Positions 16,034-56,851 of a DNA stretch of 64,000 nucleotides are shown piece by piece (position 1 is the first letter of the stretch; each line of letters begins with the position of its first letter). This stretch comes from Gekko japonicus. Lineage: Eukaryota. The translations under genes were made by a program, and so were the position numbers. Under the pieces are notes generated by a model that saw only the letters and a program-made list of their open reading frames with translations, ran no database searches and was not told the DNA's origin. The stretch spans positions 1,302,064 to 1,366,063 of the forward strand of contig NW_015165831.1 in assembly GCF_001447785.1 (NCBI RefSeq), in the 5' to 3' direction.

Positions 16034-17081
16034 CAGGGGTCTTTTGGGAACGGAGCATACCGGAGCGCCGCTCTGGGAGCCCAGGAGCTGGCAAAATGGC
16101 GGCTGCAGCAAGCCCCACTCGCAGCTCCCCGTGCTGCGGCCCGTTGCTGCCTTCCCGGGGCCCACGCTGGAGCACTGCGGCCCCAGGGAGGCCAGAGGAT
16201 GCCCGTCGCCGCCTCCCCGGGCCAGCGCCGGAGCGCTGCGGCCCGGAGGACGCTGGAGGATGCCCGTTGCCGCCTCCCCGGGCCAGCACCGGAGTGCTGC
16301 GGCCCGGAGGAGGCCAAAGGATGCCCGATGTCGCCTCCTTGGGCCAGCGCCGGAGTGCTGCGGCCTGGGGGAGACCAGAAGACACTTCCCGCTGCCTCCC
16401 CAGTCCAGCGCTGAAGCACTGCAGCCCGGGGGAGGCTAGAAGAGGGCCCACCACCACCTCCCCAGGCCAGCGCCGGAGCGGGGTAAGTGAAGGATCTGTG
16501 GGGGGTGGCGGAGACTTGATTGGGGGAGTGGGGGGGTGGGAGAGCCTCCTCCTCCCCCCATCTCTTTGTACTCTTTCTTTCCCTCCTTTCCTTCCCCTTC
16601 CTTTTCATTTCCTCCTTTTCTTTCTCTTTCCGTTCTCTTCCTTCCTTCCTCTCTTTTTCTTNNNNNNNNNNNNNNNNNNNNNNNNNNNNNNNNNNNNNNN
16701 NNNNNNNNNNNNNNNNNNNNNNNNNNNNNNNNNNNNNNNNNNNNNNNNNNNNNNNNNNNNNNNNNNNNNNNNNNNNNNNNNNNNNNNNNNNNNNNNNNNN
16801 NNNNNNNNNNNNNNNNNNNNNNNNNNNNNNNNNNNNNNNNNNNNNNNNNNNNNNNNNNNNNNNNNNNNNNNNNNNNNNNNNNNNNNNNNNNNNNNNNNGA
16901 AGGGGAGGCTTTTGAAGATGCCTTCCCCCCCCCCCTTTTGCTTCCCCTTCTGACATCTCTTCCGGTGATGTCAGGGGGCACTGCATATGCTAATGAGATA
17001 TTATGCTAATAGCCTAGTAGCTCATTAGCATACCATATGCTAATGAGCTCCTGCAGCTCTTTTTCTATGAAATGACCCTTT
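16034..17081. mobile_element. hAT element with internal about 60-bp GC-rich minisatellite and an N gap
   Basis: TIR CAGGGGTC, TSD CTACATGT; about 5 repeat units at 16160-16480. Confidence 0.85.
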
Positions 17082-17410
17082 CTACATGTTAGGTCTCTTA
17101 GTGGCAAAGCATCCCTGGTCAGAGTCTTCCCCCCCCCCGTCAAGTCACAGCTGATTTATGGCAACCCCATAGGGTTTTCAAGGCAAGAGAGGTTCAGGGC
17201 TGGTTTGCCATTGCCTGCCTCTGCGTAGCAACCCTGGTATTCCTTGCATGTCTCCCTTCCAAATACTGACCAAGCAGTCAAGCTTTTTTGGTTGTAGCTG
17301 CAGAATAAATTCACTGGGGGGAAAGAATGGTGCATATGGCAGGCACAGAATCCGAACTCAAGCTTAAAGGCTTGACTGCTCGGATTCTCTGCAGTAAGCT
17401 GTGCATGCAT

Positions 17411-17752
17411 CAGAGGTCATTTCGAGGGGGGGACACGGGGGGACGCAGTTCCCCCGGGTGAGGCGCAGGGGGCAGGGCACATGATGAAGCCCCGCCCCCT
17501 GCTTCCGGCCGCCCCGCTTCCAGCCCTCATTCACCCAGGAGGAGGCAGGAGAAGAGGGAGGGTAAGTTGCTTCCTCCCTGCCTCTCCCCACCCCTGCCTG
17601 CCTGGGGCCAGGGAGGGCCTTGGCGGGGCTTCCTCGCACTCCCGCTGGCCTTGCAGGTCCACCGCCGGGCCCCTGATGTCAGGGGATGTGGCATATACTA
17701 ATGAGTTATGCTAATGAGTTCCCCTAGCTCTTTTTCTACGAAATGACCCCTG
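17411..17752. mobile_element. 342-bp hAT MITE family copy
   Basis: TIRs CAGAGGTCATTTCG / CGAAATGACCCCTG; near-identical to 27373-27714, 33680-33997 and the partial copy at 1-125. Confidence 0.9.
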
Positions 17753-18289: not shown

Positions 18290-21200
18290 TTAGGCTTCAT
18301 CCTGGATAGTGTAGATCACCAAGTCTTTAGAGAGGTCCTCATCTGCCGTCCCGCTATCCTGATCATCAGAACGCAAGCCAGAGTCCAGGGCCTCTTTGTG
18401 TTTGCGTAGTTTGTAAAGGAGGGTCACCAAGTTCCGCTCCACCTGCCCCAGGGACTTCATGGAGGATCGGACGGAGCAGCCATGCCTGGGAAGACCAGGC
18501 GTTTGGGCTGGGGACATCTTGCAGTCCATAACCTGTGCAGAAGAAAGCAGCACAGTGGTCGTTCGAGCAAGCCGCAGTACCCTTTACAGGTGAGGGGAGC
18601 ATCAGATCTCCAGACACTTCCCGTGCATGGAAGCATGCTCCGAATTGTAATGGTTCAATGAATTTCACCCTCTACTTGCATCCGGCTTTCGTGTCTGGGG
18701 AATGGGAAGGTCAGGCAATGGGTTCCTCCAGTCCCCTCAATCCATATCTCCTGCACCGACTCTTAAGTGATGTCTGTACAATTTACCCCAGAGATCACTG
18801 CACCCTCCAATCCCCAGCTAACATATTCGGCAGTTGCCTCACCGAATCCACACTTCCTGCTTTCATAGCCTTTTGGATCACGGTTGCAGCCAACAGCTCC
18901 ATTTGTTCCTAGAAGCTTGATAATGTAGCACGGTTGGCTGCAGCTTTATAGGACCCCTTCCCATCAGCGCTGGCTGTTGGGGGCCCCAATCATAGAGTTG
19001 CCAGCCTCTTGGAGCTCCCCCAGAACTACAACTCATCTCCAGGCTACAGAGATCGGTTCTCCAGGACAAAATGGCTGCTTTGAGGGTAGACTCTATGGTG
19101 CTATACCCCACTGAGGTCTCTCCCCTCACCAAACCCCACCCTCCCTAGGCTCCACCTCCAAATCTCCAGGAATTTCCCAACCCTACATAATACTATAAGA
19201 CATTATGGTTGGTAGGGTTGCCAGCCTCCAGTTGGTTATGCAGGAAATACAACACTGTGTATACTAATTTTATAATATATATAGAAGAGTCATATCCAAG
19301 TGTTTGTATGGTTTAAAATCTTTATTCATAGACTGTGGTAATTATATTGATTTTAAACCATACAAACACTTGGATATGACTTTTCAATGTATATTATGAA
19401 ATATTAAAGACATGTGTAACTACTACAAAATAATCAAGGAAATGTGCTATATCATAAGTATAATCAAGGAAATGTGCTATATCATAAGTATAATCAAGGA
19501 AATGTGCTATATCATAAGTATAATCAAGGAAATGTGCTATAAGTATAATCAAGGAAATGTGCTATATCATAAGTAAGTCCATGCATAATATATGACCAAT
19601 GTCTCAGTAGATGTAATGCCAGAGATCCCACTTGTAAACTCAGGGTAATCAGACTCTCTTACTGAATGTCGGACGTAAAGACGATCTCCGCTGCAGCGTT
19701 TCCAGGGATGCATGGTTCCAGTGAACCAGTTTCAAGCTTGAAAAAGCCTTAAGCAAAACGTGATTTCCATTAGCTGGCTTGCATGTTGGGGTCACTGGAC
19801 TAGACTAGATTAGTCATTAGACTAGATCTAATGGGTGGACATTACAAGGGAGTCGATACCGGCTAAATATCAGGAGAAACTTCCTAACTGTAAGAGTGGA
19901 TGAGCAGTGGAACAGACTGCCTCGGGAGGTGGTTTGATGCTCCCTCACTGGACATTTTCAAGCGGGGGCTGGACGACCATCTTTTTGGTATGTTGTAGGG
20001 CTATCTTTTGGCTATGCTGCTGCAGAGTGCAGGGGGTTGGACTAGATGACCTGCAAGGTCCCTTCCAACTCTAATATTCTATGATTCTATGATATTCAAG
20101 CATTGGTAGGGTTTAAAATCTTTATTCATGGATTGTGGTAGTTATACTGAATTATATTAGATATTATACACAGTGTTGTATTTCCTGTATATTCCTGATC
20201 CTGACTGTGTATCTCACTTGTTGTAGCCTCCAGGTGGCACTTGGAGGTCTCCCAAAATTTGAACTGATCTCCAGGCAACAGAGATCAGTCCCCGTGGAGC
20301 AAATGGCAGTTCTGAAGGATGGACTCTATGGAATTACACCTTGCTGAGATGAGATCCTCCCCTTCCCCAAACCCTGCCATTCCCAGGCTCCACCCCCAAA
20401 TCTCCAGTATTTCCCAACCCAGAGTTGGCAACCCTAGTTGGCATGGAAGGGAATTATATTTTAAAGAGTGTTTGACAAGGAAATTCTGAGCTCAGATGAT
20501 CCTATCAGCATGGAGCATATCTCTAATCCTGTATTAGGATGGTAGTGTTGCCAGCTCCAGATAGGGTTGCCAAACCTTTTTTTCCAGCGGCAGAACTCTA
20601 TGTTTTCCCCTCAAATGGCTGTGGCCCCGCCCCCAGCGTGCCCGGCGTCATCACGTCACATCTGGGTGACGTGGACGCGGGGGTGGGGTTTCCCCTGGGG
20701 CCCGATTCCGCGGGGGTGGAAATTGGGCCTCCAAAGCGGGGGGGGGGGGAATCTGCCCCCCGGGGGGATTTGGCAGCCCTAGCTCCAGACTGGGAAATTC
20801 CTGGAGATCTGGGAGTGGATTTTGGGGAGGGGGGGATTTGGGGAGGGGGGGAACCTCAGCAAGGTGTAATGCCATGGAATCCACCCTCCAAAGCAGCCAT
20901 TTTCTCCAGGGGAATTGATCTCTCTAGTTTGCAGATCAGTTGTGATTCTTGGAAATCTCCAGACAAACACCCCCCCCCCAAGGTTGGTGACTCTAGTGTG
21001 TAGACATATGATTCCATTCCTGGGACCAGACTCCTGTCTCCAGACAGCACAGCCGCTGTTCCAGAAGGGAGAAATGCACCCGATGTCCAGCACTGCACCC
21101 ACCAACCAGCATGTCCCTCACGTGGGCACTCACCTTCGTCCCCTGCCACGTGGGGCATGGCTCCATGGGGAAGTCATCCAAGAGCCAGGCCAGGCCATAA

Positions 21201-21376
21201 AAGCCCATGAGGCTCAGCAGCCACAGCACGATCCTCCGCTCCAGCCCCTCAGGCAGAGACTGCAGGCCTTGGTCGCTCTGGACCTCAGAGGCCTTGTCCT
21301 GCTTATACAAGACAGGGGCGGCCCAGCCCCCCGTGCAGCAGAGGGCGAGTACAAGGAGCCTGCTGCCCAGGACCAT
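18290..21376 (-). CDS. FAM209-like single-pass membrane protein A, 2 exons (21376-21134, 18532-18290), 161 aa
   Basis: GCCATGG start; exon 1 = MVLGSRLLVLALCCTGGWA (signal peptide) ... QSLPE ... IVLWLLSLMGFYGLAWLL (TM) ... GTK, then AAG|GTGAGT donor (phase 0). Acceptor ctttcttctgcacag| opens exon 2 VMDCKM...SLGQVERNLVTLLYKLRKHKEAL...DLVIYTIQDEA*. AATAAA on - strand at 18237-18242. Family call is from recalled similarity to human FAM209A/B. Confidence 0.75.
19431..19575. repeat. 30-bp tandem repeat, about 5 copies
   Basis: Unit TAATCAAGGAAATGTGCTATATCATAAGTA; one unit has a 5-bp deletion. Confidence 0.95.
19822..20092 (+). mobile_element. CR1 LINE 3' fragment (same subfamily as 63032 copy)
   Basis: High similarity to 63290-63570; ATTCTATG tail. 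Confidence 0.85.
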
Positions 21377-24300
21377 GGCCTGCTTGCTCCTGGTTGTCAT
21401 AGGCCTTGCCATGGCAGTGGCCAGCAGTGACATCACAAACCCCTCGGTAGGTGAAGCAGCTTGGGCTCTTGACCTCCTCGGTTTCCACAGAACGAGTGTT
21501 GGTGGTCTGCGAGTGAAGCCCAGCCATGAAGGCAAGCGGGAGGACTGAGCTTCACAAAAGTGGCCTACTCCCTAAAGCCCCCTGCATGTCTTCTTGGGGC
21601 TCAAGTAGGGATGCCAGCCTCCAGGTGGGACCTGGGGACCCCCCAGAATTACAGCTCCTCTCCAGACGACAGAGATCAGCTCCCCTGGAGAAATTGGATG
21701 CTTTGGAGGGTGGACTCTAGGCCATTGTACCCCACTGAGGTCCCCAGTCTCCACCCCCCAGTTCTCCAGGAGTTTCCAAACCTGGATCTGGCACCCCTAC
21801 GCCCTCATCCCCTGCTAGGGTTGCCAAGTGGCACTTACCTTGCCGGCGGGGGACTCCCGGGTGGATCTCGGCATGCGCGCGTGCCGCACACACGTCATCA
21901 GGAAGTGACGTTATGATGCCGGGCACGCTGGGGGCGGGGCCATGACCATACAAGGGGAAACCATAGAGTTTTCCTTTGTATGGCTGTGGCCCCGCCCCCA
22001 GCGTACCCGCGTCGCTTCCTGGTGACGCGCACGTCGGGGAGGAGTTCCCCCCAGGGCCCGATCCAGCGGCGCCGGGGAACATCCAACTTGGGATCCCTAT
22101 CCCCTGCCAGGGGGGACATAGCAACCCTAGGCTGAACCCTGGCTTTAAAAACATATTCTGGAGTCAAATCCCCACTGATATGAAGCCCTAGGTGGCATAT
22201 TCCAGAGTCAGAACCAGACCCTTCCCATCCTGCACCTCTGATAGGGCTGCCAGCAGGGTTCTGCTATTACAATGATCTCCAGACGATCAAGATCAGTTCA
22301 CCTGGAGAAAATGGCTGCTTTGGAGGGTGGGCGGTATGGCTTTAATCCTGCTGAGGTCCCTCTCCTCCTCAAATGCCACCCTCTCCAGGTTCCACGATCT
22401 CCGGGTATTTCCCCAGCCCAGAGCTGGCAAATCTAGTTGCCAGCTGTGGAAATTTTGGGGTTGGAGCCTGGGGAGGGGAGAGACCTGAGCAGGGTATAAT
22501 GCCATAGAGTCCATCCTCCAAAGCAGCTATTTTATCCAGGGGGACTGATTGCTGTAGCCTGGCGATCAACTATAATTCTAGGATAGCTCCAGCCACCACC
22601 TGGAAGTTGGCAACATTAAACGTAGATCCCGGCCCAAGTACAGGATGTGATTAGGTAGGCCCTAGATTCAGTGAGAGCTAGGGTAGCCAATAGGATTGCC
22701 AGGTCTGGGTTGGGAAACCCTGGAGATTTCGGGGGTGGAGCTTGAGGAGGGTGGAGTTTCGGGAGGGACCTCAACAAGGTACAAGGCCATAGAGTCCACC
22801 CTCCAAAGCAGCCATTTTCTCTATGGGAACTGGTCTTGATTGTCTGGAGATCAACTGTAAAAGCAGGAGATCTGCAGGTATTACCTGGAAGTTGGCAGCA
22901 CCAGTGGCCAATCTCCAGGTGGGGCCTGGCGTACGATTGTCAGGTCAATGTTAGGAAATTCCTGGAGATTTGGGGGCGAAGACCGGGGAGGGTGGAGTTT
23001 GTGGAGAAGGCGCTCAGGCGGGATGTGATGCCACATAGTCTAAACCCCCCCCCCCAAAAAAAGCTGCCATTTTCTCCAGGGGAACTGATCTCTGTAGAAT
23101 GGCGATTCGTGGTAATTTCTGGAAAACTCCACCCGCCACCTGGGAGTTGGCAACAATGCTCCCTCTAAGCTGTGGAGTCTTGTGAGCACAAATCCTACTT
23201 TGTGAGCCACTGGCATTAAAGTTGTGAGCGAGCAATTTGACTACTGCATAAATTAGTTTGCTCTGGAGCCCTCCTTCCTGTGCTAAGACAGAAATGTGTG
23301 AGCCGGAGGCTAAAAAACTGTGAGCCAGCTCACACTAACTCAATTTAGAGGGAACACTGGTTGGCAATCCTAGCCTGGAGGGGTCCTAGAATTATCACTG
23401 ATCTCCAGACTACAAAGCTCAGTTCCCTTGGTGAAAACAGCTGCTTTAAAAGCTGGGCTCTATGGCATTATACTCACCTGTAGTCCCTCCCCTGCCTTCC
23501 CCAAACCCTATCCTCCACGGCATCATCTCCAGACCTCCAAGAGTTTCCCAAGCCAGAGTTGGCAGCCCTAGTGAGAGCCCAAGGCCATCTGTGTCCCTCT
23601 GTCAGCTCTTGCTCTAGTGTTCCGTAGAGCCAGAATGGTGTGGGGGTTAGCGTGTCAGGCTAGGATCTGGGAGACCCAGGTTCAAATGCCCCCGCCCTGC
23701 CATAGAGACTTGGTGGGTGACCTTGGGCCAGTCACACACTCTCAGCCTGACCTACCTCACAGGGTTATATCGTGAGACGAAAATGTAAGAGAGGAGAACA
23801 AAGTGAGCTACTTTGGATCCTTATTAAAGAAATGGATTAATTAATTAATTATCGTATGGCAGTGGGTGTAGTATAGCCAGGAGATCCGAAGATTGTCTGG
23901 CAGCCTGAAACTCTAGCTCTTTTTGTGGCGAGCTGGGTTTGTTTTTTTTGGGCTGAGAGAACTGTGACTGGCCCAAGGTCACCCAACTGGCTTCCTGTGG
24001 AGGAGTGGGGCATAGAACTACAGTTCTCCAGATTAGAGTCCGCCGGCACCGCTCTTAACCACTACACCAAATTGGCTCTCCTATTGGAGAGAAAAGCAGT
24101 GTATAAACAAAGTAACAAACAAACAAATAAATACCCATATCTTCTAGATTGCCAACTTCCAGATGTGGCCTGGAGCCCACCTAGAATTACAGCTGATCTC
24201 CAGACTCAGGAAGGTCTGGGTTGGAAGACATGGCAGCTTCAAAGGGTGGACAGGACTCTATGGTCTCACATTCNNNNNNNNNNNNNNNNNNNNNNNNNNN

Positions 24301-25352
24301 NNNNNNNNNNNNNNNNNNNNNNNNNNNNNNNNNNNNNNNNNNNNNNNNNNNNNNNNNNNNNNNNNNNNNNNNNNNNNNNNNNNNNNNNNNNNNNNNNNNN
24401 NNNNNNNNNNNNNNNNNNNNNNNNNNNNNNNNNNNNNNNNNNNNNNNNNNNNNNNNNNNNNNNNNNNNNNNNNNNNNNNNNNNNNNNNNNNNNNNNNNNN
24501 NNNNNNNNNNNNNNNNNNNNNNNNNNNNNNNNNNNNNNNNNNNNNNNNNNNNNNNNNNNNNNNNNNNNNNNNNNNNNNNNNNNNNNNNNNNNNNNNNNNN
24601 NNNNNNNNNNNNNNNNNNNNNNNNNNNNNNNNNNNNNNNNNNNNNNNNNNNNNNNNNNNNNNNNNNNNNNNNNNNNNNNNNNNNNNNNNNNNNNNNNNNN
24701 NNNNNNNNNNNNNNNNNNNNNNNNNNNNNNNNNNNNNNNNNNNNNNNNNNNNNNNNNNNNNNNNNNNNNNNNNNNNNNNNNNNNNNCTGACCTCCCTCTC
24801 CTTCCTCACCAAATTCTGCCCTTCCCATGCACAGCCCCTAAATCTCTAGGAATTTTCCAAGCTGGAGTTGGCAGCCCTACGTTCTTCTTTCTCTAGGTCC
24901 TTCATGATTTCCCCTCATCCCACTAGGGTTGCCAGCTCTGGGTTGGGAAATACCTGGAGATTTGGGGGGTGGAGCCTGGGGAGGGCGGAGTTTGGGGAGG
25001 GGAGGGGCCTCAGCAGGGTGCAGTGCCACAGAGTCCATCCTCCAAAGCAGCCATTTTCTCCAGGGGGACTCGTCTTGGTCGTCTGGAGATCAACTGTAAT
25101 AGCGGGAGATCTCCAGCCACCACCTGGAGATTGGCAACCCTACATCCAACTCTTTTCCTCCCTTCCCTTGCTCTGGACTTTGTGGCTTTTTTGCCTCACC
25201 TTCCCCTTGGTTTTGCCTGTGCTTCACCCTACAGCCTTCAGCTTGGCTCCCCCACCCAGCCCCAGAGATGTGTTCCACTGCATTCTCTGCCATAGTTTAT
25301 TCTTTCTTTCCAGGGCCCTTCTGGGCTGCAGACCCCGCGACAGGCCTCAAGC

Positions 25353-26855
25353 TTAGTCCTCCACAATGTTATACACAGCCAGGTTAAAGGCCTTTCCGCT
25401 TTCTCTGGCCCGCCGGCAGTCTGATGTCTTGCAGCCTCGATGGCGCACAGCAAGGCTGGCCTTGCGGCTTCGCACTAACGTCATGAGCTTCACCAGTTCC
25501 TGCTCCATCTCTGTGAAGGCCTGAAGAAGGCGGTTTTCCAGCTCCTCTGGCCTTGAGAGGGCCACTTCCTGCTGAGGAGAGGGAAAGGAAGGACCTTAAT
25601 TAGACAGGACCATGGTGGCCATAGTTGAAAATCTTTTATTTTCCCTTCTTTCCCCCCGGAAGGCTGGATTTGATACCAGCACTACCCCTTCCATTAAAGG
25701 CTGTCTGACATTCAACATGGGATGTAGACATGTCATGTCGCCTTAAGATCAGGGTCTGATCCATCTCCCCACATTCCTTCATCTATCCAGATGAAGAAAT
25801 CTGGAGCGCATGATACATGGTTCTTCACACTCTCTATGTAGGACGCTTGCTCATCTCCCTTGTGACTTTAGTGGAGCTCTGAGTGATTTTGATCCAGGAT
25901 GGAGTATGCAGCCTGAATATTTCGGGATAGAGGTTGTTTAAAGAGGGGAGAGGCTGAAGGGCTACGCTTGGAGGACCTCTTCAGCCTACATGAAGCTGCC
26001 TTATACTGAATCAGGCCATTGGTCCATCAAAGTCAGTAGTATCTACTCAGACTGGCAGTGGCTCTCCAAAGTCTCAGGCTGAGGTCTTTCACATCACCTC
26101 CTACTTGGTCCTTCTGAATGGAGATGCCAAGGATTGAACTTGGGACCTTCTGCATGCCAAGCAGAGGCTCTACCACTGAGCCAGGGCACATCCCAGTGTG
26201 TTCATTGATGGGGGGATAATATCATGAGGGGCTTCAGGGGAAGGTGCTGCTACTTAGATACAAAAAGCCATGTATCGTACAATCACTTCTTATCCAGGAG
26301 TAGGGCTGCCAATCTCTGAGCTGGGGAATTCCTGGAGATTTGGGAGTAGAGCTCGGGAAGGACTGAGTTTGGGAGGGGGAGGAACCCCAGAGGGGAATAA
26401 TGCCACAGAGTCCACCTTTCCATTTTCTCCAGGGGGACTGGCCACTGTAGTCTGGGGATCAGTTGCATTTCCATGAGATCTCCAGTTCCCCACCTGCAGA
26501 TTGGCAACCCTGTCCAAGAGATCAGTGAGACCAAGGCTGTCTCCAAATCCATCTGGCTCCACACCCACTACTGGTGCTCAGCCTCTGCCAGAGAGAATTG
26601 GGTTAAAAAAAACACCCTGCATGATCTGAATGAAGCAAAACAAGAGGATTACCCCTTCACCTTTCTTTCCTCTGCCTTCTCCTCATTGGGCATCTCAAAG
26701 CTACGTTTTGTCCCAATTGCCAGCAGCACCAAAACCACGGTAGAGATAAATACCCAGACCTCCCATGGGCTAGATTCCTTCTGTCCATCGACTGTAGCTT
26801 TGGCTCCAGCAAAGCATCCCTGGCAGAAGCAGAACACCCACATCAGAATGAGCAT
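25353..26855 (-). CDS. FAM209-like single-pass membrane protein B, 2 exons (26855-26661, 25571-25353), about 137 aa
   Basis: ACCATG start; MLILMWVFCFCQGCFA signal peptide, VWVFISTVVLVLLAIG TM, exon ends ERK|GTGAAG (phase 0). Acceptor tttccctctcctcag|CAG (NAGNAG); exon 2 has AFTEMEQELVKLMTLVRSRKASLA and C-terminal NLAVYNIVED*. AATAAA on - strand at 25296-25301. Confidence 0.75.
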
Positions 26856-27372: not shown

Positions 27373-27714
27373 CAGGGGTCATTTCGTAGAAAAAGAGCTA
27401 GGGGAACTCATTAGCATAACTCATTAGCATATGCCACACCCCCTGACATCAGGGGCGTGGCGGTGGACCTGCAAGGCCAGCAGGAGTGCGAGGAAGCCCC
27501 GCCAAGGCCCTCCCTGGCCCCAGGCAGGCAGGGGTGGGGAGAGGCGGGGAGGAAGCAACTTACCCTCCCTCTTCTCCTGCCTCCTCCTGTCTGAATGAGG
27601 GCTGGAAGCGGGGCGGCTGGAAGCAGGGGGCGGGGCTTCGTCATGTGCCCCGCCCCCTGCACCTCACCCGGGGGAACTGCGTTCCCCCCGCGTTCCCCCC
27701 CGAAATGACCTCTG
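27373..27714. mobile_element. 342-bp hAT MITE family copy, opposite orientation
   Basis: TSD GTTCCACT. Confidence 0.9.
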
Positions 27715-29586
27715 GTTCCACTTCAGCCCTGTAAGTCCTTGGAAATTTCTACCATGGCAGCTTCCCAACATGGGATAGTGGGTGGTCATCCTTCCTTGAA
27801 GCTAGTGATACAGTAGTACGAGTGTGCTTGCACATGAAAGCTTTTTTTGTTGTTCAGTCGCACAGTCGAAAGCTTAGACCTTGAATAAAACTTTGTTGGT
27901 CTTAAAGATGCCACTGGACTCAAACTTTGTTCTTGAAGTACCAAGTGGGAGAGTTTCTCCTCAGATTGGAGTTTGTGTCTGAATGTTGTCTCTTGAGGGT
28001 GGGTGGGTGTATAAAACAATTCCCACAAGTAGGGAAATACCACGTCATCTCTCCTCCTCAGCATGCTAGGGTTCTGTTTGGTTTCAAGCAGGTTGCTCTT
28101 AACAGGGGAGAATTCAAACCGGAACCCAGAATCAGGAAAACTGGCCCTTGTAGGGAAGAGGAGAAGCAGGGCTGTCCACTGGGACCATTCAAACGTGACG
28201 TGACGCAATGCAGGAGACGTTTTATTGCTTGATTCCGCTAACATAAATGGATTCTTCCAGCTCTGAGCTGGTCCAATTCTTCATACCTCTGGAGAATTCT
28301 GAGGCAGAAATGCTATGCACGCTTTCTTCAGAATGTCTCTCTGAAACCAGTGGGGATTACCCACATACACATCTGTTGGCTATCCCACCACTTAGGGTGG
28401 CCTGTCTGGCATCCACCACACAGCTCAGGCCTTTTCCATTGTGGCACTGGCTCAGTGGGATGGGGTCCTGGAAGGGGTGAGGGCCCCCCTCCCTGGAGAT
28501 CTTCAGGAGGCACTGAAAGGCCTGCCTGTTTGCCAGAGCTTGGGGGGGGGGTTGAATGGCATTTTAAAGGGATGGGGGAGAGATTTGGGGTTTGCTATTT
28601 TATTTTTGAGTTCAACTGTCACGGAGGGAGCCTAAAGAAGGGCAAAGCAGTTGTGCTCTGCTCCCTCCTCCAGGAAACAAGGGCTAGTTGTTGCCGTGGG
28701 ATGACCAAGGGAGTTATGCTATTATTTTGGGCTGCGGAAGAGAGTCCATGACCTGAAGGGCCCAGGCTAGGCCAACCGTGTCAGATCGCAGAAACTAAGC
28801 AGGGTTGGCCCTGATTAGTACTGGGATGGGAGACTGCCAGGGAAGCGAAGTCCAGGCTCACTACGCAGAGGCAGGCAATGGTGAACCAACTCTATTAGTC
28901 TCTCGCCTTGAAAACCCTACAGGGTCACCGTAAGTTGGCTGTGACTTGATGGCACTTTCCACCAGAGGGGCCAACACCACATCTCCCAGTCTTGGACAGC
29001 TGGAAATAGCACGCTGGCATTACGCTGCCTAAGCATCATGTGGCGACAAGGAAGCTCTAAGAAAGCTCACGGGCAGGGTGTTCCTCAAAGAACTGGTGGC
29101 AGGTCAATGCCAACGTAGGTTAGACGGTAGACTTTTACTGGACAAAACCAGGAACATACAAATGCTCTCATTAACACACAGTTCCTCATCATCAGAGAGA
29201 TGTATGAGAAAAGAAAATCAGTCTATCGTATCTGTTCACCAAGGATGCATATGTGCAGCTACTTCATGTGATTGGTTTTCAAATATATATATATATACAT
29301 TATATACACACACACACACACACACATATATACACACATGCACTCTTCTAAACTAATGGTATTTATTTCTTTGTTTACATTATTTATGGTTCACCTTTCT
29401 GACTGGAACTCAAGGCAGATTACACAGAGGGAGCCAATATAATCCACAGGGCGGGACATTCAGTAAACAATGAAAAAGGATTTGGATTGTAGAACCAACC
29501 AGAAGTCAAAACACAGAACTGAAGCAAACACTAAATGACATCAAATTACGTAGGATCCAATTTATGGCAGACTATACACAGTAGTA

Positions 29587-29937: not shown

Positions 29938-31135
29938 TATACACAGTAGTATGAATGACGGTCCCTAATAATTTGTCCAAGTAATTTTGTGAATCATTTT
30001 GTACAGTACTACCCTATTGCCTTGGTAGAAAAGCCCTCTTGAAAATTATCTTTCCACATTGCAAACTCAGCCATGTTGCAAATTGACCTCTTAACCTTTC
30101 TCTCTTGCCAGCCACTGGGCCTCTCCAAGTAGAGTTTTGAAGCGGGNNNNNNNNNNNNNNNNNNNNNNNNNNNNNNNNNNNNNNNNNNNNNNNNNNNNNN
30201 NNNNNNNNNNNNNNNNNNNNNNNNNNNNNNNNNNNNNNNNNNNNNNNNNNNNNNNNNNNNNNNNNNNNNNNNNNNNNNNNNNNNNNNNNNNNNNNNNNNN
30301 NNNNNNNNNNNNNNNNNNNNNNNNNNNNNNNNNNNNNNNNNCGGAAATTGGAAAGTCTACACCCTAATGGGCCAAGTGTCCTGTTAGGCAGTGGAAAGGG
30401 AAGAAAGGGAATGCAGTGGCTTTCCAGGTTGCTCACAGACAGTGTCAAGGGTCAGCACAGTGAGGCAATTGCCTAGGCCTAACATCTAGCAAAGGGTCTG
30501 CAGATTGGAGACAGGCAGCCTATCTGCTCCTCAGAAGCTACTTATAAACATTGCCTGTGATGTCCCAGGGGCGATATCCCATTTCCTGCTGGGGGAAAAG
30601 CACTGTTCTTTTGTTCTTCTTGCTGACGCTGCCTAGGGGGCCTAAAAAAGGGCAAAACGCTTGCGCTCTGCTCAGTTCCTCCAGGGTTTGTCTGTGCATG
30701 CACTTGAAAGAGCAGTGTGCTCACTGGAAGGGGGCAACATCTGGCAGCATACTGGCCAATCTCCCCCCCCCCAGAAACCAGCAGATGATCCTTTGTAGCC
30801 CACTATCTCCCAATGCTAATGCAATCCACACAGCCCCTTCCCCAAGTCCAAAAACGGAGAGCCAAGAAAGGCTCTCAGCTTCATACTGTGGGCGATGGGG
30901 GAGTGTCCATCTAAAACAGGCGAGCTGCCCTGTGAGTTGTCTCAGAGAGTTGAAATCAGCCACAGACTTACAGGGTAGCTGCCCTGGTTAAGCCACCCTC
31001 TCTGTTTTTGATTGTCTTATCTGGACTTTTCTCTCTGGAGTTTGGGCCGTGGTCCATTATTCCTTTCCTCCCTCTTATCCTCACAACAGTAAAAAGCTCT
31101 GTAGCACCTTTAAGACTAGCAAACTTTATTGTAGC

Positions 31136-31461
31136 TAGGGTTGCAAAATCCGTCTTCGCCGGGAGCGGGGGGCTCCCGGCCGGTGTCGGGGGGGNNNNNN
31201 NNNNNNNNNNNNNNNNNNNNNNNNNNNNNNNNNNNNNNNNNNNCCCACTGGGGATGGGGCCACGGCCATACAAGGGAAAACCATAGAGTTTTCCCTTGTA
31301 TGGCCGTGGCCCCGCCCCCAGCGTGCCCGGTGTGCCCATGTCACTTGCTAGTGACGCGCAAGCCGGGGGCGGGGTTCCCCCGGGGCCCGATTCCGTCGCG
31401 TCGGAAATCGGCCCTTCAAAGCAGGGGATTCCCCGCCCCCCGCCCACATTTGGCAGCCCTA
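31136..31461. mobile_element. GC-rich TAGGGTT-TIR hAT element interrupting a Penelope remnant (relative at about 21816-22130)
   Basis: TSD ATTGTAGC; internal hairpin. Confidence 0.88.
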
Positions 31462-32302: not shown

Positions 32303-33277
32303 TTGTTGTTGCTGTTCAGTCGCACAGTCGAGTCCGACTCTTCTTGACCCCATGGACCAGCTCCTGCCAGGCCCTCCGGTCTTCCGCCATCCTCTGAAGT
32401 TTGCTCAACTTCATGTTCGTTGCATCGATGACACTGTCTAACCATCTCATCCTTTGCCATCCCCGTCTTCTTTGACCTTCAATCTTTCCCAGCATCAGGG
32501 TCTTCTCCAGTGAGTGCTCCCTTCTCATTTGGTGGCCAAAGTATTTGAGCTTCAGTTTCATTATCTGGCCTTCCAGGGAACAGTCAGGGTTGATTTCTTT
32601 TAGGATTGACTGATTTGTTCTTCTTGCAGTCCAAGGGACTCTCAAGAGTCTTCTCCAGCACCATAGTTCAAAACAATCTATTCTTCGGCGCTCGGCCTTC
32701 CTTATAGTCCAACTCTCGCAGCCATACATGACTACTGGGAATACCATTGCTTTGACCATGCAGACTTTTGTTGGCAGGGTGATGTCTCTACTTTTTATCA
32801 TGCTGTTTAGGTTCGCCATCGCTTTCCTCCCAAGGAGCAGGCGTCTTTTAATTTCATGACTGCTGTCACAGTCTGCGGTGATCTGGGATCCCCGGAACGT
32901 GAAGTCTGTCACTACTTCCACGACTTCTCCTTCTATTTGCCAAGGAGTGATGGGGCCGGATGCCATGATCTTAGTTTTGTTGATGTTGAGCTTCAAGCCC
33001 ACTTTTGCGCTCTCCTCTTTTACTCTGAGCAAGAGGCTCTTTAGATCCTTTTCACTTTCAGCCATTAGAGTGGTATCATCTGCATATCTGAGGTTGTTGA
33101 TCTTTTCCCCAGCAATCTTAATTCCCGCTTGTGATTCATCCAGGCCAGCATTTCGCATGATGTACTCTGCATATATATTAAATAAGCAAGGTGACAATAT
33201 ACATCCTTGTCGTACTCCTTTTCCTATGCTAAACCAATCAGTTGTTCCATATCCGGTTCTAACTGTTGCTTCTTGGC
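32303..33277 (-). mobile_element. 5'-truncated RTE-clade LINE (BovB-like), open RT C-terminal ORF 33197-32316
   Basis: INNLRYADDTTL, ELWCWRRLLRVPWTARR motifs; (AAC)n tail; probable TSD CCAGGTT. Confidence 0.93.
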
Positions 33278-33997: not shown

Positions 33998-36900
33998 CTT
34001 ACGACTGGGCATGGAGTTCAATAGGTAACAATTGGCGACGAAGGTGGGATACTAAGAGCAGGTAGTCAGCCCCGCTGAACAGACGACAGGATGGAGAACA
34101 AAGACACACACCCGGCCGAGCCAGCTGAGGCACCACTTGCCGTTGTGGTCGCTCCAACCGCTGCGATGGCTGTCAACCCGGCGTTCGAGGTGTTAGAACC
34201 GGGAATGGAGGACTGGGATTCATACCTGTCCAGGTTTGAATTCCATCTACAGGCGAACTAGATCATGGACGAGGCGAGGAAGAAGGCAACACTGCTCAGC
34301 TTCTGCGGCAAAACCGTCTTCAAAGTCGCCCGGTCCCTGGTTGCCCCAACTGACATTCAGACAGCGACATGGAAGGTCATCACAGACTGGCTGAAGGCTC
34401 ACTTCTCGGGCCCAACCGAGTCCATTGCCGAGTACATCACTGCTCTGCGGAAAGCAGCACGCACCTGCAACTTCACCAACCTCGAGGAAGCTCTTCTCGA
34501 TTGTCTCATGTGTGGTCTGTGGGACGAGAGGATGCAGCAGCGCCTGTTCGCCAAAACAGCGCTCACATACAACGTGGCCTACACAGAGGCTGTCGCTGCC
34601 GAGGCTGCCGAGAGGTCAACGCGACAGGTCCATCAGCGCCATTCCCAGACCGGGAAGGACCAGTCAGTGCACCACCAGTCAACCAGTGGGTCCGAAGAGG
34701 AGACCGATGACGTACATCGGACGCAAGCCGCACGACACAGGCAGACCCCTGTGAAGACTGCATCGCAATGCTCCTGCGCAGGTTGTGGCGGAAGTCACGA
34801 GCGGGACCAGTGTTGGGCGCAAGACTTCATCTGCCGCACCTGTGGGAAATGGGGCCATTTGGCAAGGGTCTGCCAGGCCAAGAAGAAATCACCACCGTTG
34901 TCTCCTGCTGCAAGGCCTCGAGTTCGAGTCAAGGACGGCGAGCGGTCTGCCAACTGCCACCGGACCGATTGCTGCACCTGCCCGTCGACAGTCCTGAGCA
35001 CTGGAGCAAGCCCCAGAGGGAAGATCCTGGTCACCATTCGGCTAGACGATGTTCCTTGCGACATGGAGGTCGACTCCGAATCTGCCATGACTGTCATTTC
35101 GTCGCAGACCTGGCAACGTTTGTTCCCGCGGAGGAGTCGCCGCCACCTGACACCGTCAACTGCGCACCTCTTCAATTTTCAAGGGCGGCGTATTCCACTG
35201 GCTGGCCAGGCCAGTTTTGAAGTGGAGTTCAAGGGTCGCAAGGTATCATTGTCCCTCCTTGTTGCTGAGGGAGACCGGGCCAGTCTGTTGGGCCTAGATT
35301 GGTTCAAACCCCTCGGTATTGCTGTAACCAGGGTAAACAAAGTGTGTGTAAATAAAGGGGAATGCATTTATGGTGAGTTCCCAGAGGTTTTTGATGGGGG
35401 GCTTGGTCAGTATACTGGTCCACCTGTGAGGTTCGACCTAGACCCCACAGTAGCGCCTATCTGGTTAAGATATAGGAAGGTTCCAATCTCAATTAAAGCA
35501 AAAATAGAGGCTGAATTAGACAAACTAATCGCTTAAGGTATTCTGGAACCCATTCCTTATGCAAAATGGGAAACTCCTATTGTAACTCCTGTGAAATCTG
35601 ATGGCTCTGTACGTATCTGTGCCGATTATAAGTGTACAATTAATAAGGCTTTGCAACAGCATTCTTATCCGGTGCCAGTGATTAGCCATGTACTGGCGTC
35701 ACTGGGGGGTAGAAAGGTTTTCGCCAAGTTAGATCTAGTGCAAGCGTACCAGCAGCTCCCTGTGGACGCACAAGCTGCTGAAGCCCAAACAATTGTGACC
35801 CACTGGGGTGCGTTCCGTGTAAATAAGTTACAATTTGGGGTCAACGTCGCCCCAGGAATCTTCCAAGGTTTTATGGAAGGTCTGTTACGAGGGTTATCGG
35901 GAGTAGTTCCATACTTTGACAATGTGTTGATTGCAGGATCTAACGAGTCTGAATTACTGAACCGACTAAGGGCGGTCTTGGGTCGCTTCAAAGAAGCGGG
36001 TCTTAAAGTAAAAAAGTCCTTGGAGTATCGCAAGTTGAGTTCCTGGGGTTCCTTATAGACAATCAAGGAGTCCACCCCACGGCAGATAAGATTTCTGCAA
36101 TCCAGAATTGCCCAAGTTTGAAAAAAGAGCTGCAATCATTCCTCGGAATATTAAATTTCTGTCACTCCTTTTTGCCTCACAAAGCCTCTGTGGCCGAACC
36201 GTTGCATGGTTTATTGTATAAGGGGATGAAATGGGAGTGGGGTGCGAAGCACGAGAAAGCATTTGCCTCTGTCATAGCACTTTTGTCATCTAAAGCTGTG
36301 TTAACGCAGTATGATGAGGAAAATGTTACTATTAGCTGTAGACGCTTCCCCGTATGGGGTTGGCGTGGTTTTGAGCCACATCATGGCGGATGGGCGGGAA
36401 GCACCCGTAGCGTACTATTCGTGGTCCCTGATGGCTGCCGAAAAGAACTACACACAGATTGACAAGGAGGCTCTGTGGCGGGAATTTAAAAATTCCACAA
36501 CTTTGTTTATGGCCGCTGGTTCCTCCTTGTCACGGATCACAAGCCGCTGCTGGGACTGTTCTCCCTGGACCAGCAGATGCCCAACGTGATGTCTCCCTGC
36601 ATGTTGTGGTGGGCCATTTTTCTTTCAGCTTATGACTTTGATTTAGAGCACTGACCGGGCAAGGCTATCAGACATGCAGATGCTCTCAGCCATTGCCCTC
36701 TGCCCCAAATGGACGTTGATCCTGCTCCCGCCTTTAAAGTCTTGGCCATTGACGAACTGCCTCAGCCTCCGGTCCACTCCTTGGACATTGCTGCTGCTTC
36801 AGCTAAGAACTCTGTTCTGTCCTGAGTCCTTAACTGGGTTTGGAGGGGGTGGCCGGCAGGTCGTTTTGAACCGGAGTTTTGGCCGTATAGTTCACAGCAA

Positions 36901-37392
36901 ACTGAAGGGATGTTTACTGTGGGGGAACCGGGTGGTGGTACCTCTTAATCTTAGGGAGAGGGTCCTGGAAGCTCTCCACAATGGCCATCCAGGCATAGTG
37001 CACATGAAAGCACTCGCACGCAGCTATGTCTGGTGGCCTAAGCTTGATGCGGACATTGAGGAGTGGGTGACGAACTGTATGGGTTGCCAGCAATCGCGAC
37101 CAGACACTCCTCAGGCTCCCATTTAGCACTGGGAGAGCACTCACAAGCCATGGTCTCGACTTCATGTCGATTTCGCAGAGCCGTTTCAAGGCCAAACATT
37201 TTTTATTATTGTAGATTCATTTTCTAAATGGCTTGAAGTTGTAAATATGCATTCAACGACATCACATGCTGTGATTAATATGTTGCGCCGGGTCTTTGTC
37301 ACCCATGGGCTACCGGACGGTGTCCGACAACGGGGCCCAATTTACCTCTACGGAGTTTGCCAAGTTTCTAGAGGACATACTTATATGGCATG

Positions 37393-38146
37393 TGTGACGA
37401 CCCCTTATCTGGGGAGGCCTGGTTTCACTTTAAAAGTGTTCTTTTTATTTTGTTATATTGGGGATATCCGGCTGCCACCAGGAAATTTAAGGCTTTCCAA
37501 ACCTTTATACTATACTGTTTCTATTACTGGGTAGGTAGGTCAAGTTTAAGGCTTTTCAAGGTACTAAGTGTTCCTGAGGAAGGATTCCTTTCAGCTGGTA
37601 TGTTTAAATAAAAGTAGATTTATTGAAATACTTCATAAATAAAAAGGTATAACAAAGTAACTGGTAATGTGAATATTCTGATAAATTGTTTGGTTTCACA
37701 CAAGCACTGCTCCCTTCCTCTACAGGGATTTATCAGGTAACTTTGTAACCCTTTAACTCAAGATCATCTACGTTTCTTGTTTCCCTCCAGTCTGCCACTC
37801 AGACTTTCATATAATTTCTGTTCTCTTAAACTTTACTGTTTCATATACATTCAACTTTTTTCCATACACAGAACTAGCTCCTATATCACACACAAGACTG
37901 CTTCTCTCCCAGACTTCAGAACTAACTAAAAACTTATCAACTGTCTTCATCAACTGTCAAACCTCTAACTGTCACTCTTGACAGACATACCTATTCATCC
38001 ACTCAGAAACACTTCCAAAACCCCTCCCCCTCTCTGTCAATCACCAATCACACCACTCTTGTCTCTTCAACCACTCTAATATATCTCAGCCATGCAATCA
38101 AACTTTTAAAGAGACACACACACACATAAAACAAGGAATCATTACA
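37393..38146. mobile_element. Solo LTR of a different family inserted in the Gypsy integrase
   Basis: TGT...ACA termini, 5-bp TSD GCATG (37388-37392, 38147-38151); integrase sequence (HVMSAPFHPATNGQAERMV) resumes after it. Confidence 0.85.
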
Positions 38147-39558
38147 GCATGTAATGTCTGCACCGTTCCATCCTGCCACAAACGGGCAAGCCGAACGGAT
38201 GGTTTAGACAACTAAGGAAGCACTTAAGAGAATGGGTCAGGGTGACTGGGGGCAGAAGTTAGCTTCATTTCTGCTCAGACAACACATCACGCCCTGTACT
38301 GCTACAGGAAGGAGCCCAGTTGAGCTCCTGATGGGCCGCAGGCTTACCACACTGCTAGATAGGCTCCATCTGGACTTGACAGAGACCCGATCCCCCAGAG
38401 CTGAGGTCCTGGAAATGCCACACACATTGAAACCAACTGACAAGGTTTTCACGCGCAATTACGGAGAGAGACACTTATGGCTTCCCGCCATAATCACAAA
38501 CGTTCTGGGTTCCCATATGTATGTGGCGCAGCTAGCAGACGGCAGGAAACTGCAGCACCACATAGATCAGCTCAGGCAGAGGTGGGCTGACTCCAGACTC
38601 GAGTCCAGCACTGAACCTGACACGATCCCTCACCCAGAAGGTGAACAACGAGGGCCTCCAGATGAGGAGGTGAGTGTTGCAGAGGCCCACATAGAACCTG
38701 AGGATGGGCAATCCCCAACTCAGGAATTTGATCCCTTGGATACCGGCTATCCAGACTCACTGGACAGTGAGTCATCCAGGGCCCCCGAAACCTTGTCACC
38801 ACCCAAACCTGAACCCATTGGAAGGTCACCCTCCTATCTTAGAGATTATGTCTGTCCCGGTATTGTTCCATCTTAGGGGGGAGGAATTGTTATGTCTTCA
38901 CTGTATTAAATGTCATGTTAAGCTTGAGACCTTAGCCAGGATTCTAAGATGGAACAATCCTATTGGCTAATGTATAATTGTAACCAATCAGAAGTCAGAG
39001 AACTGTGCTGGAGGGAACAAATCTGATTGGTTGTTATCTTTACAATGCTACTGGTCCTTAACTATTCTAGGGTGTGGCTACATCAGCCCGGGATAGTTTA
39101 AAAGGGAGCTATGCTCTACTGTTTGTTGTTGTGTGTTCTTCTGATGTTCCTGTTATTAATAAAGCTGATTTCATTGTTACTTACGACTCGGCGTGATAGA
39201 TTACTAATTTACTAGCTAAAGGATGGAGGCAGATGGCGAGAGGCCCATCTGCCTCACGGTGCCAAGAGAAGACAGCGTGTCCCTCTCTTGGTGCGTGCAG
39301 GTAGGGAACAAGTCTTCATTCAGAGTGAGAGAGAAGTAGGAAAGGGGAATTGGTCCCTGAGATTACAATCTGGATATCAAAAAGTAGAAGAGTAGATATA
39401 GAAGAGTAAATACAGGAAGAAAGGTCAGTGTGCCTACCTAGCTATCAAGCCTCTCTTGCCACTCAGTCTGGAGGTCTGAGACAGGGGACATTGCATCTGG
39501 AACTTCCAACACTGGCACATCCCTTTCAATGGGAACAGCTCTCGGCAGGGTGCTAGAG

Positions 39559-41960: not shown

Positions 41961-42329
41961 CAACGGGGCAGAGTTGGGGGTTGCCAATTCCTAGGTGGGG
42001 GCTGGTGAGCTTTTGGAATGACCACTTAGTCTCCAGATTACATAAATCACGTATTTATTTAAAGCATTTATTCCACCTCTCCTGGAGAAAATGGCTGCTC
42101 TGGAAGCTGGACCACATGGCCCTATATCCTACCAAGGGCCCTCTTCTCCCTAAACCCCACCCTCCCAGGAACCATCCTCAAATCTCCAGGATATTTCCAA
42201 ACCCAGAGTTGGCAACCCTATGCCAGAAATAGAACTGGGCAGGGGAGGTGGGTCTAAATTGTATCCCGAGAGCTAATTCACCCCCCCCCCTGCTTTTACG
42301 CACGGATGGCCAGGGGCCCCGTAGTTGCC

Positions 42330-43283
42330 ATGGTGAAGATCTTCGTTGGGGGCCTGTCTCCGGTGGTCACGGCCGAAGAACTGCGCAAGCTGTTTGAGCA
42401 GTATGGCCAGGTGAACGAGTGTGACATCCTGAAGAACTTTGCCTTTGTGCACATGGAGAAAGAGGACGAGGCGCACCAGGCCATCAGCTCCCTGCACAAA
42501 AGCGAGTTCTTTGGGGCCCACTTGACCGTGGAGTACGCCACCTCCAAGATCCGCAACGCCACCAAGATCTACGTGGGCAATGTTTCCGCCAAGGCCACCA
42601 CTGCCCAGATCAGGCAGCTCTTTGAGAGGTTTGGCAAGGTGGTGGAGTGCGACATCGTGAAGAACTATGCCTTCGTGCACATGGCGAAGGAGCGGGAAGC
42701 CATGGATGCCATCTTGAACCTGAATGACACCCCCTTGGAGGACCAGAAAATCTTCGTCACTCTCTCCAAGAGCAATGGCTCCCTCCGGGCCACTAAGGGG
42801 GCTACTGTACCCACCCCACCAACCCCAACCCCGAGCTACTACTTCTCTAGGGGTCGCATTCCCACTCCTGCCACGACATACACCCCCTACTGCCCCAGGG
42901 CCTGGTACGACAGAGAGTATTGCGACCGCTACTCCTATGAGCTCTACGATCGGGCCCGGGCAGCCTATGACAGGGCCTTGCCTACCCCTGCAACCTCCGC
43001 CCCAGCTGCCTACAGGGAAAGAAGCCCCGTGGGCAGGCGGACAGCGACCCCTACCGCTGTAGTGGCCCAGTACACCGATCCTTATGCTGCTGCGGCAGCT
43101 GCTGCCGCCGCCGCCGCCAACCAAACATACAGCCAAGCCTACAGCCAGCCTGGGTACGCAGCTGCCGCCGCCGCCGCTGCCGCCACATACTCCCAGTACA
43201 GCATAGGCACCGCCTACAACGTGGCGGAATACTACGAGAGGTACGCCAGTGCCTACGCTGCCCAGTACGCGCAGACGTTCTGA
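42330..43283 (+). CDS. RBM4/RBM14/lark-family RNA-binding protein (2 RRMs, Tyr/Ala/Pro-rich tail, no zinc knuckle), 317 aa, single coding exon
   Basis: GCCATGG start MVKIFVGGL; RNP1 motifs KNFAFVHM and KNYAFVHM, ECDI motif typical of RBM4/RBM14; YRERSP and poly-Ala tracts. Upstream acceptor AG at 42312-42313 makes 42330 the likely start rather than 42306. Confidence 0.92.
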   Translation: MVKIFVGGLSPVVTAEELRKLFEQYGQVNECDILKNFAFVHMEKEDEAHQAISSLHKSEFFGAHLTVEYATSKIRNATKIYVGNVSAKATTAQIRQLFERFGKVVECDIVKNYAFVHMAKEREAMDAILNLNDTPLEDQKIFVTLSKSNGSLRATKGATVPTPPTPTPSYYFSRGRIPTPATTYTPYCPRAWYDREYCDRYSYELYDRARAAYDRALPTPATSAPAAYRERSPVGRRTATPTAVVAQYTDPYAAAAAAAAAAANQTYSQAYSQPGYAAAAAAAAATYSQYSIGTAYNVAEYYERYASAYAAQYAQTF

Positions 43284-55900: not shown

Positions 55901-56851
55901 TCGAAAGCAAGAAATTGCAAGTAGATAAATAGGGACCACTTTGGTGGGAAGGTAACAGCGTTCCGTGTGCCTTGGTGTTTAGTCATGCCGGCCACATGAC
56001 CACGGAAACGTCTTCGGACAGAGCTGGCTCTTCGGCTTTGAAACGGAGATGAGCACCGCAACCCTAGAGTCGGATTCGACTGGCTTTCGAGCAAGGGAAA
56101 CTTTACCTTTACCTAATTCATAGGGTGGCCATAGGCTGGGAGCAACTCAATGGCACTTAACACGCGCACACACAAAATACATCCTGACATTGCTGCCTAA
56201 ATTGGATGAGAGAAGAGGCAGCCCTTCTTTCAGCTGGCAGCCCATTCCGTAAAGATAGGGGCAGCACTGCATACATTCCTGCTCTGGCAATCTTTCTTTC
56301 TTTACTTAATAGTCCATCTTTCTCTCTGGGACTCAAGGCAGACTTCACAGAGTGAGTCAATACAGTCGACGGATGGGACATTCAGTAAACAATGCAATAG
56401 GTTCAGGTTTGTAGAACCAAACCAGAAGTCTAAAAACAGCAAAGCATAAGTATTAACGTGACACATTAAATGCATTTCTAGAACCTGGAGCCAATTCCTG
56501 AGTGGGAACTGGGGCCCTGGTGACACTTTACCCTTGGCCTGAGTCTGCTCCAGCAGCGCAGGTATCAGCACTTCTGGGGTTCCTAGAAAATAGCTAGTGG
56601 TGGGGTTAAGGTGTTTTTGGTCTTGGGGCCCCCAGTGAAGCCCCTGCCTGCTCTTTGGGCCTTCTCCGAACCTTGCACAGGCTTCACCCTCTTTCTGATT
56701 CTTCTACCTTTTCTAGGCTTTGGACCTCGACAGCATCCAGACCCACCACTGGTGTATCCAAGGCTGCAGCGCTTACACTGGAGAGAATTTGCTGGCAGGC
56801 ATCGACTGGCTACTGGATGACATCGCCAGCCGGATATTCACAGCGGACTGA
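52769..56851 (+). CDS. ARL2: ADP-ribosylation factor-like GTPase 2; exons 52769-52833, 53921-54031, 54407-54569, 54765-54845, 56717-56851 (184 aa)
   Basis: Spliced product [31 protein letters not shown]...WDVGGQ...FANKQD...CSAYTGENL...[11 protein letters not shown]; exon lengths 65+111+163+81+135 = 555 nt, all GT-AG; AATAAA at 57150-57155. Confidence 0.98.
52834..53920 (+). other. U12-type (minor spliceosome) GT-AG intron 1 of ARL2
   Basis: 5' site GTATCCTT and branch site TCCTTAAC (53899-53906) close to the 3' AG match U12 consensus. Confidence 0.92.
55777..56113 (+). mobile_element. Sauria SINE nested in an old RTE LINE 3' fragment (about 55520-56170) in ARL2 intron 4
   Basis: 12-bp TSD TAATTCATAGGG; flanks translate to RTE C-terminus ([19 protein letters not shown]). 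Confidence 0.88.

Follow-up and report, generated by a model that had tools for sequence, protein, structure and literature searches.

A tandem pair of easily missed two-exon membrane-protein genes in Gekko japonicus, possibly related to mammalian FAM209

Only two proteins of the inner nuclear membrane are, to our knowledge, known to be required for acrosome anchoring, and FAM209 is one of them. The mouse protein has 170 amino acids (aa), a signal peptide and one transmembrane (TM) segment, with its C-terminus on the inside (PMC8627553). We analysed a 64,000-nucleotide (nt) stretch of the Gekko japonicus genome (contig NW_015165831.1, positions 1,302,064 to 1,366,063; hereafter the window, whose own numbering is used throughout), in which an earlier note, made without database searches, had proposed two divergent FAM209-like genes on the minus strand, here called gene A and gene B. 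Both are real protein-coding genes, arranged in tandem on the same strand. The reading as a whole, in which A and B are real tandem paralogues and the B family is remotely related to FAM209, we hold at about even chances, and its parts are graded separately below. The new elements are the A–B link and a possible connection to FAM209.

Neither gene is visible as a single open reading frame (ORF). Each appears when two minus-strand exons are joined across an intron with consensus splice sites, and both introns are in phase 0 (Table 1). This is where the earlier note had placed two hidden two-exon genes, and the junctions that it gave proved identical to those of proteins from other geckos. In exon 1 of both genes, Kyte-Doolittle hydropathy showed two hydrophobic segments, one at the N-terminus that closes with a small-x-small site and another of about 19–20 residues after it, bearing out the signal peptide and single TM segment that had been proposed for both. 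Exon 1 of gene A encodes a signal-like N-terminus, a luminal stretch, the TM segment RIVLWLLSLMGFYGLAWLL and a juxtamembrane PMEPC, and its exon 2 encodes PRHGCSVRS, the helix LKSLGQVE.NLVTLLYKLRKHKEAL, an acidic tail and the terminal DLSKDLVIYTIQDEA. Gene B has a signal-like N-terminus, a short luminal W-E-V-W stretch, the TM segment VWVFISTVVLVLLAIG and a charged linker in exon 1, followed in exon 2 by a helix ending in LLQAFTEMEQELVKLMTLVRSRKASL, the loop RHRGCKTSDC and a second helix ending KAFNLAVYNIVED. The single intron lies 15–16 residues past the TM segment in both gecko genes, the predicted sizes across the A and B proteins run from 137 to 161 aa, and a poly(A) signal AATAAA follows each stop codon at close to the 50 nt originally claimed. 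[quoted passage not shown]

The window exons were searched one by one, and full-length tests were done on natural orthologue proteins. Exon 1 of gene A matched a 169-aa "hypothetical protein" of Gekko kuhli (P0001) at 90% identity, and exon 2 aligned to residues 90–169 of the same protein at 85%. Used as a full-length query, the G. kuhli A protein retrieved LOC143832981 of Paroedura picta (78%) and A0ACB8G9X2 of Sphaerodactylus townsendi (67%). These two and K2H54_001334 and K2H54_004303 of G. kuhli are the gene A orthologues (67–90% identity), and the gene A junction is identical in the annotations of all three species. The start codon differs among the models, which otherwise show no notable difference from gene A. 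Exon 1 of A also matched an unspliced 127-aa ORF on a gecko contig assembled from a sequencing run, in which identity to gene A falls off straight after the donor site. Invariant columns of the A alignment fall into four clusters, namely the end of the signal peptide, the TM segment with its DD-PMEPC flank, the block from PRHGCSVRS through the helix, and the terminal DLSKDLVIYTI.DE. Judged by these alignments, the clustering and the loss of identity past the donor form the pattern of a coding gene.

For gene B, exon 1 was 97% identical to a 137-aa protein of G. kuhli (P0003) and 68% identical to a 132-aa protein of S. townsendi (P0004). Exon 2 aligned from residue 66 of P0003 with 71 of 72 residues identical, and the junction is again the same in the annotations of both species. 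Because the annotated proteins run on into the window's second exons, the junctions given in the earlier note are those of independent annotations. Since database proteins of other geckos share these junctions residue for residue, the existence of A and B as coding genes goes beyond chance; both are already in databases as unnamed predictions from related species. Gene A, on this comparison, evolves faster than gene B, because identity to G. kuhli is 85–90% for A and 97–99% for B. Two finer claims of the note fared less well. Of its shared phase-0 intron following a lysine, the phase holds, while the lysine is not conserved even among gecko A orthologues; and "QSLPE", which it had offered as a shared motif, has to be given up, as the A orthologues of other geckos read QYLPE, RYVPA and LCLLE.

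We then examined how far the two families extend. A profile of two B orthologues, searched with HMMER against 1.84 billion representative proteins at E ≤ 0.001, returned six clusters and nothing more: one from S. townsendi, one from Podarcis muralis and P. lilfordi, one from Pogona vitticeps, one from Phrynocephalus forsythii, and two of sequencing-run assembly fragments. Orthologues and close relatives of gene B match at E values of 1e-19 to 1e-80, and they include K2H54_004298 (G. kuhli), A0ACB8G9N5 (S. townsendi), LOC144325759 (P. muralis), LOC140702841 (P. vitticeps) and JRQ81_009117 (P. forsythii). Gene B has the marks of this squamate LOC144325759-like family, with significant full-length similarity, the MEQELVKL..VR..K helix, an H-x2-C-x4-C loop and the FNL.VY.I.E end. 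The helix, cysteine loop and terminal motif are alike in gene B and its squamate relatives, and the junction is the same where visible, whereas the N-terminal halves diverge strongly; the Podarcis model has a longer N-terminus (170 aa in all) and the Pogona model has no clear signal peptide. On the strength of these matches the B family is present in three squamate lineages, Gekkota, Lacertidae and Agamidae. The accepted squamate tree puts the common ancestor of these three at the squamate ancestor, so the family would have been present there. For gene A, a word-based protein search, a method blind to distant copies, found no homologue outside geckos.

The relation between the two genes is visible at the level of profiles. 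Exon-by-exon BLASTP between A and B found no similarity. A hidden Markov model (HMM) of eight B-family proteins was used for an unfiltered search of the window's open six-frame segments, 1672 in all, and after gene B's own exons the best match was exon 2 of gene A (E 0.009, 12.7 bits; next 1.5). The reciprocal search with an A-family HMM gave exon 2 of gene B as the best non-self match (E 0.072; next 1.0). Aligning the two families with hhalign joined 58 columns, beginning where the helix does and extending to the C-terminal ends (P 6.9e-5, probability 63%). The conserved helix and the C-terminal L-x-[IV]-Y-x-I-acidic motif that had been noticed in both genes are therefore aligned by the family profiles; the likeness of the two proteins, as the earlier note described it, is seen with profiles and undetectable by BLASTP, and tandem paralogy is probable. 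No third copy of A or B was found in the window by the family HMMs.

The promoters offer a second line of comparison. The 11-mer TGTGATGTCAC has only two copies in the window (0.04 expected), both on the minus strand, one upstream of each ATG (Table 1). The immediate flanks of the copies agree too, and beyond the gene B copy, on its upstream side, are two CCAAT boxes. The core of the 11-mer, TGATGTCA, differs by one base from the cAMP-response element (CRE), and CREM-dependent spermatid promoters typically carry CRE-like boxes near the start site. The shared element suggests an independent point of kinship between A and B. That the two genes are tandem paralogues we consider likely on the sequence evidence, gene A being probably a distant, faster-evolving and so far gecko-only paralogue of B, born by tandem duplication.

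We next compared both families with the Pfam profile of FAM209 (PF15206), which has a gathering cut-off of 27 bits; the usual inclusion level of HMMER is E < 0.01. Exon 2 of gene A scored 11.6 bits (E 0.22, profile positions 93–147 of 149) and exon 2 of gene B 13.4 bits (E 0.064, positions 93–121), and exon 1 of either gene had no match in the Pfam scan. All nine B-family proteins matched PF15206 (14.6–21.0 bits), and it was the top Pfam family for eight of them. The strongest match was P0007 (E 0.00029, 21.0 bits), followed by P0008 (E 0.0021, 18 bits), P0005 (E 0.0031), P0004 (E 0.0035), P0003 (E 0.0036), P0006 (E 0.0042), P0010 (E 0.021, where FAM209 came second after DPM3) and P0009 (E 0.027). 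Six of the nine thus had E < 0.01 (0.00029–0.0042), although unrelated families reach similar E values on two. The aligned part of the profile always runs from 92–95 to 121–144 and is co-linear, and two of the matches align TM to TM as well (profile 42–121 and 47–144). The match is not driven by hydrophobicity, because P0008, a 57-aa fragment without a TM segment, still scores 18 bits. These profile matches lead us to favour, by some way short of confidence, homology of the B family with FAM209; for A and B as a pair, a FAM209 link is plausible but unproven.

A number of observations weigh against this link, and most of them can be read as support for a different explanation, in which A and B belong to a squamate-specific type-I membrane family unrelated to FAM209, the likeness arose by convergence or chance, and the function is not acrosomal. 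Every FAM209 match lies under the curated cut-off, which none of the nine B proteins reached (best 21.0 against 27 bits). Other Pfam families score alike on the same proteins, with Calc_CGRP_IAPP (E 0.0062) and DPM3 (E 0.0033) each matching once, so the noise floor lies near the FAM209 signal. The nine matches amount to about one observation, because the proteins are homologues sharing one conserved core. The four gecko A-family proteins had no FAM209 match in Pfam, and the B-profile search of 1.84 billion proteins returned no mammalian FAM209, nor any other mammalian protein. A profile search of the PDB with the B family gave only butyrophilin TM and juxtamembrane matches at E of about 1, including a TM-plus-helix match to BTN3A1 at 12.5 bits. 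Structure look-alikes of P0003 and P0007 in the ESM Atlas were matches to long helices only, with no FAM209 lead. The locus differs as well: synteny with the mammalian FAM209 locus was not found in the 64-kb window, where nothing resembles the genes that we take to be the mammalian neighbours. The published account confines FAM209 orthologues to monotremes, marsupials and eutherians, stating that other taxa lack them (PMC8627553), and a literature search gave no paper joining FAM209 and reptiles among those listed. Set against the unrelated-family explanation is the fact that FAM209 is the sole recurring family, always co-linear and reaching the C-terminal end of protein and profile alike; that six matches pass the inclusion level of 0.01; that the fragment P0008 scores like full proteins with no TM segment to help it; and that size and architecture fit published FAM209 (170 aa, signal peptide, one TM segment, C-terminus inside). 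We regard an unrelated squamate family as doubtful, though well short of far-fetched. The family assignment of the earlier note comes out of this as weak, with the B-family matches of 14.6–21 bits in its favour and, on the other side, a cut-off of 27 bits that lies above them and an A family that has nothing beyond the E 0.22 match of exon 2.

Two further explanations concern the genes themselves. Gene B by itself could be FAM209-like, with A an unrelated gecko-specific neighbour that shares the architecture by chance. The BLASTP result, the missing FAM209 match of the A-family proteins, a poor AlphaFold2 model of A (pLDDT, the predicted local distance difference test score, of 44) and the thinness of the profiles behind the A–B link (effective sequence number, Neff, 1.3) all speak for such a neighbour, the last counting also against paralogy in general. 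We nonetheless judge it improbable, given that A and B are reciprocal best non-self HMM matches within the window, that hhalign aligns helix and terminal motif end to end at P 6.9e-5, that strand, exon number and intron phase are common to both, and that the 11-mer stands at a similar distance from both ATGs. It is more improbable still, to the point that we give it hardly any weight, that the models are non-functional, being chance ORFs or decaying pseudogenes taken up by automatic annotation. The G. kuhli entries are indeed automatic "hypothetical protein" calls flagged UNVERIFIED_CONTAM, and gene A changes fast, with 85–90% identity to that species. Against decay, however, frames and junctions are intact for A in three gecko genera and for B from geckos to agamids and lacertids, conservation is focused on the TM segment, helix and terminal motif, identity collapses just beyond the donor site, and gene B is 97–99% identical to its G. 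kuhli counterpart.

AlphaFold2, run on the B alignment (mean pLDDT 68), gave a signal helix at residues 2–24, a TM helix at 31–52 and a low-confidence linker, followed by a tail (pLDDT about 77–91) made of a long helix at 73–108 (pLDDT 80–91), a short loop and a second helix at 115–136. The corresponding model of the A family (pLDDT 44) was set aside. The B loop carries the invariant residues H109, C112 and C117, and the motif that they form, H-x2-C-x4-C (RHRGCKTSDC), is invariant between the tail helices; a role in metal binding or disulfide formation is possible. In place of this loop, RHGC is conserved ahead of the helix in the A family. W-E-V-W, beside the TM segment of gene B, agrees with WxxW, the consensus at which DPY-19-type enzymes carry out C-mannosylation. 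A WxxW is present in Gekko and Sphaerodactylus (W-E-F-W) and not in Podarcis or the agamids. Mouse FAM209 is without this consensus (PMC8627553).

From this architecture a mechanism may be proposed. In both proteins the helical tail, facing the cytoplasm or nucleoplasm, would be the working part, with its amphipathic helix and a terminal hydrophobic-x-[IV]-[YF]-x-I-x-acidic motif, the tail of gene B being modelled as a helical hairpin with H-x2-C-x4-C in the loop. A remote kinship between the B family and mammalian FAM209 is probable. If A and B are related to FAM209, the proteins would reside in spermatids, in the endoplasmic reticulum or the inner nuclear membrane, with the tail in the nucleoplasm, where it would bind DPY19L2 and associated acrosome-anchoring proteins. 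FAM209 homology, expression in testis, localisation and partners are features that we infer for A and B.

An assembly gap separates the two genes, 2.9 kb upstream of the ATG of gene A and about 0.5 kb downstream of the poly(A) signal of gene B, and it interrupts no exon or reading frame of either. Both flanks of the gap are copies of an interspersed repeat resembling a short interspersed nuclear element (SINE), of which the window contains over a dozen, so the order and spacing of A and B hang on the scaffold join. Weak hints of adjacency elsewhere come from G. kuhli, whose orthologues K2H54_004303 and K2H54_004298 share a 178-Mb contig and have locus tags that differ by five, and from S. townsendi, where orthologues of both genes are annotated. 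Besides flanking the gap, the SINE-like repeat has copies within the intron of gene A and immediately upstream of gene B. The pair is bracketed by two oppositely oriented copies of a GC-rich repeat (about 300 bp), judged from their near-identical translated ORFs and each containing one TGATGTCA. Three more assembly gaps fall outside the pair. Farther along, ARL2 exons carry LDNAGKT, WDVGGQ and NKQD in succession, with a Pfam Arf match (E 2e-23) on segment 54285-54641. The RBM4-like ORF, so called by eye, may be an intronless copy. The pol region of the Ty3/gypsy-type long terminal repeat (LTR) retroelement is broken, its domains being split over several frames, and a remnant resembling a long interspersed nuclear element (LINE) was judged by eye.

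Table 1. Features of the gene pair and its surroundings, in window positions; a slash marks an exon boundary.
Feature	Position	Strand	Remarks
Gene A CRE-like 11-mer TGTGATGTCAC	21437-21427	-	51 nt upstream of A ATG
Gene A extra in-frame upstream ATGs	21400, 21412	-	
Gene A coding exon 1	21376-21134	-	81 codons; donor AAG/GTGAGT
Gene A intron	21133-18533	-	phase 0; rich in SINE-like repeats; junction same as G. kuhli P0001
Gene A coding exon 2	18532-18290	-	80 aa + stop; pyrimidine-rich acceptor ...tttcttctgcacag/
Gene A poly(A) signal AATAAA	18242-18237	-	48 nt past stop
Gene B CRE-like 11-mer TGTGATGTCAC	26921-26911	-	56 nt upstream of B ATG
Gene B coding exon 1	26855-26661	-	65 codons; donor AAG/GTGAAG
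Gene B W-E-V-W	26754-26765	-	fits WxxW consensus
Gene B intron	26660-25572	-	phase 0; junction same as P0003 and P0004
Gene B coding exon 2	25571-25353	-	72 aa + stop; acceptor ...ccctctcctcag/
Gene B loop H-x2-C-x4-C	25416-25442	-	RHRGCKTSDC
Gene B poly(A) signal AATAAA	25301-25296	-	52 nt past stop
Assembly gap (N)	24274-24786	.	intergenic, gene B 3' end to gene A promoter
Other assembly gaps	16662-16898, 30147-30341, 31195-31243		outside the gene pair
SINE-like repeat copies (examples)	20271-20453, 22279-22437, 22687-22847, 60405-60572		
GC-rich repeat, about 300 bp	17367-17711, 27414-27731		outer sides of the gene pair, opposite orientation
LINE-like reverse-transcriptase C-terminal remnant	32316-33197	-	293-aa ORF
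Ty3/gypsy-type LTR retroelement	34265-38873	+	423-aa gag-protease-like ORF, then RVT_1 and integrase zinc-binding domains
RBM4-like ORF	42258-43280	+	341 uninterrupted codons; two RRM domains; Pfam RRM_1 E 2e-29
ARL2 exons	53925-57000	+	LDNAGKT, WDVGGQ, NKQD in successive exons

What the pair means depends on the FAM209 link. Tentatively, and with somewhat less than even confidence, we suggest that FAM209 is of amniote age and not a mammalian invention, having been kept in squamates as the B family with A as a fast gecko paralogue, at a different locus, under a CREM-type spermatid promoter and with a DPY19L2-linked role in acrosome anchoring, the H-x2-C-x4-C loop having been lost or replaced in mammals. 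The "amniote-age family" of the earlier note is drawn wholly from the sub-threshold PF15206 match. If it is right, a squamate relative moves the origin of the FAM209 family back to the amniote ancestor, shows that the truly conserved parts of FAM209 are the helix and the terminal [IV]-Y-x-I-x-acidic motif, and provides a non-mammalian system for probing the link between DPY19L2 and FAM209. If the FAM209 link is false, A and B are still two easily missed, unnamed genes that make up a squamate family, clear in its architecture and with a promoter element in common.

Finally, we set the gecko genes beside the described mammalian system. They share with mouse FAM209 their small size (137–161 aa against 170 aa), and signal peptide, single TM segment and inside tail are in common, the gecko topology itself being inferred from hydropathy and AlphaFold2. 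Between the FAM209 profile and the B family, the TM segment, helix and C-terminal motif align in the same order. The luminal part, by contrast, is far shorter in gene B than in FAM209, and gene B, unlike FAM209, has the invariant H-x2-C-x4-C loop between two tail helices. The setting differs too, as the earlier note had said in calling the locus unlike that of FAM209 on human chromosome 20: the genes near A and B are ARL2 and an RBM4-like gene, whereas mammalian FAM209 has other neighbours.

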